From: Octopus bimaculoides
Taxonomy: Eukaryota
DNA length: 64,000 bases
NCBI RefSeq assembly: GCF_001194135.2
Contig: NC_068988.1
Coordinates: 53,055,240 to 53,119,239 of the forward strand
Reading direction: 5' to 3'
Below are positions 53,798 to 53,947 of this stretch, piece after piece. Under the pieces are notes generated by a model that worked only from the letters and a program-made list of their open reading frames with translations, had not been told where the DNA came from and searched no databases. A program made the translations under genes and the position numbers. Position 1 is the stretch's first letter. Every line of letters starts with the position of its first letter.

Positions 53798-53914
53798 CAG
53801 GCAGATCACATCAACCCTGGTTACCCGCGAAAGTAGGCGGGATACCAAGGGGCGACCTGAACCTGTGCAAAAAATCGTCACAGATTAGACTGTGGAGTCA
53901 GGCATTACCCTGAC

Positions 53915-53945
<31 letters not shown>

Positions 53946-53947
53946 AT
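53798..53947 (-). ncRNA. RNU12: U12 minor-spliceosomal snRNA gene (150 nt)
   Basis: Reverse complement starts ATGCCTTAAACTAATGAGTAAGGAAAATAACGA, nearly identical to the metazoan U12 5' end including the GTAAGGA branch-point-pairing sequence. It has stem-loop GAGTCAGG/CCTGACTC, Sm site GATTTTTTG and the 3' stem-loop CCCGC-CTACTTTC-GCGGG. It ends ...GTGATCTGCCTG like human ...GCGATCTGCCCG, and the length matches. Confidence 0.96.

Follow-up and report, generated by a model that had tools for sequence, protein, structure and literature searches.

A full-length U12 snRNA gene in a repeat-rich window

The window, that is, the whole 64,000-nt stretch of DNA analysed here, belongs to a draft eukaryotic assembly; it is interrupted by many N gaps, abounds in TA/CA microsatellites, and contains repeats of SINE-like and LINE-like type. 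On its minus strand lies a gene for the U12 snRNA. A cmscan search against Rfam 15 matched positions 53798 to 53947 (-) to the U12 family (RF00007) with 129.7 bits (E = 9.6e-26), well over the gathering score of 53. The initial annotation, which had proposed a comparison with this Rfam family, had placed a U12 gene at these same coordinates, to the base. It had described the gene as intact, which agrees with a match that spans model positions 1 to 151 of 151 without truncation and with the canonical fold of the RNA. It had also remarked that the gene is missing from the ORF listing, as is natural for this RNA gene. U12 was the sole above-gathering Rfam match in the entire 64-kb window, a relaxed E-value Rfam scan of the same 64 kb returned no second U12 fragment, and clan competition assigned the locus to U12, not to U2. 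The gene and its elements are as follows.

53798..53947, minus strand: U12 snRNA gene, full length, 150 nt (RF00007 match, canonical fold, and 79% identity to human U12)
53935..53947, minus strand: U12 nt 1-13 (AUGCCUUAAACUA), U6atac helix I pairing region (role from PMC3201867)
53924..53930, minus strand: U12 nt 18-24, GUAAGGA, branch-site recognition (role from PMC3201867)
53895..53916, minus strand: stem-loop IIa, 8-bp stem GAGUCAGG/CCUGACUC with loop GUAAUG (single-sequence fold and alignment consensus)
53879..53894, minus strand: stem-loop IIb, 5-bp stem CACAG/CUGUG with a 6-nt loop (MFE fold and Rfam alignment)
53868..53875, minus strand: predicted Sm-protein binding site AUUUUUUG, nt 73-80 (unpaired between IIb and III in the fold)
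53798..53865, minus strand: stem-loop III, nt 83-150, the long 3' domain (fold and alignment)
53824..53841, minus strand: apical hairpin of stem-loop III, CCCGC-CUACUUUC-GCGGG, loop at 53829-53836 (sequence, Rfam alignment, and fold)
53972..53977, minus strand: TATA-like ATATAT, -30 to -25, putative promoter element (position matches other U12 genes)
53763..53776, minus strand: 3'-box-like GTATCAAAAGTAGA, +22 to +35, putative 3'-end signal (core AAARNNAGA)

In a single-sequence fold, the RNA takes on the canonical U12 architecture at -58.8 kcal/mol (minimum free energy; z = -5.47), a stability reached by none of 200 shuffled sequences. From the 5' end, the fold consists of stem-loop I, the 8-bp stem-loop IIa, the 5-bp stem-loop IIb, a 13-nt single-stranded stretch that contains the Sm site AUUUUUUG, and the long stem-loop III, which is tipped by a 5-bp stem and an 8-nt loop. 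Stem-loop IIb was delineated by the fold and the Rfam alignment only, the MAFFT alignment being poor in this region. In the Rfam alignment the Sm site is set against the consensus AAUUUUUG. The same alignment places a one-base insertion relative to the consensus in the apical loop, namely the C at 53829. This apical hairpin is the part of U12 to which 65K (RNPC3) and RBM41 bind (PMC3201867, PMC4980772, PMC11039992).

The recognition sequences at the 5' end are strongly preserved. Nucleotides 1 to 31 match human U12 except at position 13, so that the segment from nt 1 to nt 13 carries an A in the window where human U12 has U; A is the usual nt 13 in the metagenome U12 set described below, among the matches listed. 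Collectively, these data make the identification as U12 secure.

The U12 gene sits within a unique stretch of ~3.8 kb between SINE-like copies at 52121-52450 and 56254-56540. Two SINE-like families, with copies 60-85% identical to the reference copies, flank it on both sides. SINE-like copies were located at 44116-44278, 49215-49377, 51812-51974, 52121-52283, and 56254-56416, and further SINE-like copies at 50372-50472, 52350-52450, and 56440-56540. These repeats yield recurring spurious ORFs (e.g. ...RLPNPLTRLWSARGYSRR... and, on the other strand, ...VEDTCPRCHA.GLNL.PCG...). Near the end of the window, an ORF resembling a LINE endonuclease domain runs from 62826 to 63083 (+) and, past an N gap that interrupts it, to about 63782; a protein search with it recovered four distant ENA homologues only, and no Pfam match. 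No protein-search match was obtained for a 128-aa ORF located 400 nt downstream of U12, and no exact-protein record for the four ORFs adjoining the gene. Among ten neighbouring ORFs, nine lacked a Pfam match and one had a marginal match under the curated cut-off, and no host gene for U12 can be defined from the ORFs around it. The window contains no tRNA. Sub-threshold matches to mir-297, mir-3149, mir-1277 and others (e.g. 58500-58581, 15548-15618, and 42360-42429), with scores far under gathering, were discarded as low-complexity artefacts of TA/CA microsatellites, not as miRNA genes, and sub-threshold snoRNA matches were likewise discarded, all of them falling on microsatellites or repeats.

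Conservation and covariation across U12 genes

For comparison, U12 loci of eukaryotes were sought in metagenome contigs by way of GCCTTAAACTNATGAGTAAGGAAAA, a conserved segment of the 5' end, which yielded at least 120 loci. All 20 diverse loci checked by Rfam proved to be full-length U12 (63-143 bits), and the score of the window gene was the second highest of the 21 U12 genes scored. The best match in this set is 80% identical to the window gene, the remaining loci being at or below this value (among the matches listed). The sequence specific to stem-loop IIa of the window had no match in a bacterial and archaeal genome collection, and the general U12 5' pattern had none in bacterial or archaeal genomes or in viral contigs.

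We aligned the window gene with human U12 and 18 metagenome loci (alignment A1, n = 20). RNAalifold identified 32 consensus pairs in this alignment, 20 of them with double changes, and 95.4% of the cells hold standard pairs on the consensus structure. The covariation score of 0.425 was reached in none of 500 shuffles, which gave 0.197, and it fell to 0.123 or less when the pairing partners were slid. All eight pairs of stem-loop IIa show double changes, in line with the reported variability of its sequence under retained pairing (PMC3201867). Nucleotides 3-12 and 14-27 do not vary among the 20 aligned sequences, the window included, and neither does the branch-site recognition sequence GUAAGGA within the latter segment.

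The window gene forms standard pairs at 31 of the 32 consensus positions, the lone exception being an A-A opposition in stem-loop III, at the edge of an internal loop. It deviates in a single one of the 52 columns with at least 90% conservation, a count that ranges from 0 to 7 in the other aligned sequences. The structure of the U12 family is thus well supported, and the window gene fits it. As a separate observation, columns 37/48 of A1, within stem-loop IIa (window positions 53900 and 53911), hold an A-U pair only in the window, the tally at this position being U-A 8, C-G 7, G-C 2, and A-U 1; this pair is a possible lineage marker.

Differences from human U12 and other snRNAs

The human reference was the U12 sequence printed in bioRxiv 10.1101/2021.08.01.454689, with which the human segments quoted in the initial annotation agree. 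The window gene is identical to it at 119 of 150 positions (79%). Both RNAs are 150 nt long, form the same helices, have the Sm site in the same place, and carry the apical CUACUU with its closing C-G pair, features that are also those of RF00007. Five pairs are changed on both sides with pairing kept, of which stem-loops IIa and IIb contain two each and stem-loop III the fifth. The two in IIa had already been noted as compensatory; they correspond to alignment columns 34/51 and 37/48, and turn the human stem GATTCGGG/CCCGAATC into GAGTCAGG/CCTGACTC. The two double-sided changes in IIb, where the human stem is CUCAC/GUGAG, were read by hand. In addition, the IIb loop has 7 nt in human U12 and 6 nt in the window, the Sm site five U in the former and six in the latter, and the apical loop 7 nt (CTACTTT at the DNA level) as opposed to 8 nt (CTACTTTC). 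All these differences lie within the normal range of the family.

Two other snRNAs provide further points of reference. U2, the major-spliceosome analogue, belongs to the same Rfam clan (CL00006) and resembles U12 in recognising the branch site and in a comparable stem-loop layout (PMC3201867), whereas the branch-site recognition sequence of the window gene is of U12 type, unlike that of U2. Human U6atac carries, in its distal 3' stem-loop, a CUACUU loop with a terminal C that is bound by the same RRMs (PMC4980772, PMC11039992); it is nevertheless a different snRNA, and in human assays it is bound about 2-3 fold less tightly (PMC5824358, PMC11039992).

Putative promoter and 3'-end signals in the flanks

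The hexamer ATATAT at -30 to -25 is the only TATA-like one in the 100 nt upstream of U12. Its position coincides with a sharp peak of TATAWW in the 93 non-redundant metagenome upstream regions listed, with 29 occurrences between -35 and -26 against 0-5 in every other 5-nt bin; many metagenome U12 loci accordingly share with the window a TATA-like box near -30. Downstream of the gene, the core AAAAGTAGA at +27 to +35 (53763-53771, -) fits AAARNNAGA, a vertebrate consensus that we take to be the core of the snRNA 3' box and by which we identify this stretch as 3'-box-like. In the window, AAARNNAGA matches at 68 sites, both strands counted, and a chance occurrence in a given 30-nt stretch has a probability of ~0.016. 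Since the TATA-like and the 3'-box matches are short sequences in AT-rich surroundings, each constitutes no more than moderate evidence.

The 93 listed upstream regions combine the TATA-like peak at -35 to -26 with a second peak, at -60 to -51, of a CCCATAA-type motif. This suggests a two-element promoter layout that would be widely shared outside vertebrates. Several metagenome U12 loci carry the CCCATAA-type motif at about -55, whereas the motif CC[CA][AC][TC]AA is absent upstream of the window gene, where no recognisable proximal sequence element was identified either. On the 3' side, the flanks of many U12 genes, seven metagenome loci among them (L039, L011, L116, L008, L117, L019, and L020), open within their first 15 nt with an ACCCC-type run that gives way to an A-rich stretch, and the window has AACCCCCG at +8 to +15 (53783-53790, -). 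Such ACCCC-type flanks may belong to the signal that directs formation of the 3' end, or to a precursor tail.

A TATA-like box might also suggest transcription by RNA polymerase III. A run of six T terminates this polymerase, and we rejected the idea because the T6 within the Sm site would bring about termination inside the gene; besides, no T-run follows its 3' end. The most likely reading of the flanks is instead that of an active, Pol II-transcribed gene, whose promoter would include the TATA-like box at -30 and whose 3' end would be formed under the direction of the 3'-box-like element ~27-35 nt downstream.

Probably a working gene rather than a dead copy

The compensatory changes with respect to human U12 had been put forward as a sign of a selected gene as opposed to a retrocopy. 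This argument does not hold, because a recent retrocopy or duplicate of the organism's own U12 would inherit the very same changes, which therefore do not discriminate between these origins. What they record is selection along the lineage since its split from vertebrates. Better evidence for a gene comes from the scarce decay at conserved columns, the flanking motifs, the lack of an A-tail, and the lack of a convincing target-site duplication.

The alternative that fares best is a recent DNA duplicate, silent or a pseudogene, of the organism's real U12 gene, in which damage has not yet had time to build up. Multiple copies of snRNA genes, inactive ones included, are frequent, and broken U12 copies do occur in the metagenome set (L042, L085, L069, L097, and L102); the lack of a recognisable proximal sequence element upstream of the window gene also speaks for such an origin. 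Against it stand the full length of the gene, its near-top score within a set of genuine U12 genes and its single deviation in 52 conserved columns, the TATA-like and 3'-box-like motifs at the expected distances, and the lack of any other U12-like sequence in the 64 kb. We consider a silent duplicate improbable. As for the broken metagenome copies themselves, L085 contains a palindromic turn-back inside stem-loop III, L042 loses homology within the apical hairpin, and in L069, L097, and L102 nothing of U12 persists beyond the first ~30 nt; all five are damaged or chimeric and may be pseudogenes or assembly artefacts.

A LINE-mediated retrocopy of the U12 RNA is far less plausible still. The surroundings are rich in SINE- and LINE-like repeats, and a 13-nt AT-rich direct repeat (12/13 matching) at -6 to -18 recurs 159 nt downstream. 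However, the sequence after the U12 3' end has no poly(A) tail and starts with GGGTATTAACCCCC, and retroposition would not bring along the promoter-like and 3'-box-like motifs seen here. The flanking direct repeats amount to two short AT-rich pairs that are not collinear, with downstream copies at least 159 nt past the RNA end, as chance matches in AT-rich DNA would be; we rejected them as target-site duplications on account of this arrangement and of their distance from the RNA 3' end.

Having weighed these origins, we regard the locus as very probably a normal animal gene for the U12 snRNA, and one that most likely functions. Established knowledge of U12 leads us to expect that its RNA would assemble an Sm ring and that its apical loop would bind U11/U12-65K, thereby bridging U12 to U11.

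The 8-nt apical loop and the 65K interface

The apical loop had been described as an altered, possibly lineage-specific variant of the 65K-binding loop, on the grounds of one extra C relative to human U12. The extra C, the loop length of 8 nt, and the location in the hairpin bound by 65K/RNPC3 all stand (PMC3201867, PMC4980772); that the loop is altered or peculiar to one lineage is not supported, as 8 nt is common among the matches listed. The initial annotation had itself named a wide occurrence across metazoans as the outcome that would remove the novelty of the extra C, and the survey below gives that outcome.

Loop length was surveyed in the U12 genes recovered by a hairpin search, in which 53 distinct sequences carry 8-nt loops and 19 carry 7-nt loops (among the matches listed). 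Single-linkage clustering at 85% identity, a deep threshold in view of the 79% identity between human and window U12, resolved 24 clusters; the loop measures 8 nt in 14 of these, counting the cluster of the window, and 7 nt in 7 of them (among the matches listed). In A1, the extra loop column is occupied in 15 of 20 sequences, those without it being human U12, L040, L039, L031, and L012. Eight nucleotides are therefore the majority state in diverse U12 genes among the matches listed, and because 8-nt loops prevail there, the loop is not lineage-specific. At the eighth base itself, 6 clusters have U, 5 have C (that of the window being one of them), and 3 have A (among the matches listed). The loop CUACUUUC recurs unchanged in two unrelated loci, L087 and L113, and UUACUUUC is present in L019, L117, and L052; together with L116, these five loci have, like the window, 8-nt loops with a terminal C. 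By this comparison, CUACUUUC is a form that the 65K-binding loop commonly takes outside vertebrates.

Published work on 65K points the same way. The C-terminal RRM of 65K contacts loop nt 114-119, CUACUU, and its critical determinants are U115, A116, C117, and the closing C-G pair (PMC4980772). At the level of sequence, the apical hairpin of the window contains all the published 65K determinants, with CUACUU and the closing C-G pair unchanged, and the claim of an altered 65K-binding loop is not sustained. The 3'-most loop base, on the other hand, is known to vary, being U in human U12 and C in human U6atac as well as, in some organisms, in U12 (PMC4980772). The hairpins bound by 65K are also ligands of RBM41 (PMC11039992). 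The eighth loop base may thus be viewed as a variable spacer adjoining the closing pair, at a site that tolerates variation. The 7-nt human loop being the minority form among the matches listed, an extra base relative to human is no sign of an altered 65K interface.

A lineage-specific C that alters 65K recognition, perhaps with a matching change in the C-terminal RRM, would find support in the window loop being one base longer than the human one. It is nonetheless highly improbable given the prevalence of 8-nt loops, the five clusters with C as the eighth base (the window's included, among the matches listed), the identical loop in L087 and L113, the preserved critical bases and closing pair, and the documented variation of the 3'-most base (PMC4980772). 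Moreover, U12 with the loop reversed or deleted left ~50% of splicing activity in human cells (PMC3201867). We give just as little credence to the notion that CUACUUUC co-evolved with the 65K C-terminal RRM in its own lineage, so as to acquire a binding preference unlike that of the vertebrate pair. Least plausible here is a sequencing or assembly error, which a draft assembly with many N gaps might invite, but no N runs occur for several hundred bases around the gene, the C at 53829 lies outside any C homopolymer, and an 8-nt loop is the expected U12 state outside vertebrates.

Discussion

Rare minor introns depend on U12 for the recognition of their branch point, and an intact U12 gene is expected in an animal with U12-type introns. 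The locus described here is an ordinary member of this well-known family. Its annotation is correct but routine and already known in kind, and the value of the locus lies mainly in that correct annotation. Surveys with this Rfam U12 model already cover over 3000 genomes of eukaryotes, including that of Octopus sinensis (PMC10639083). The case also advises caution against human-reference bias when the length of the U12 loop is judged. Seen against U12 genes at large, the compensatory changes and the 8-nt loop appear as normal variation of the family, with no lineage-specific change at the 65K interface.
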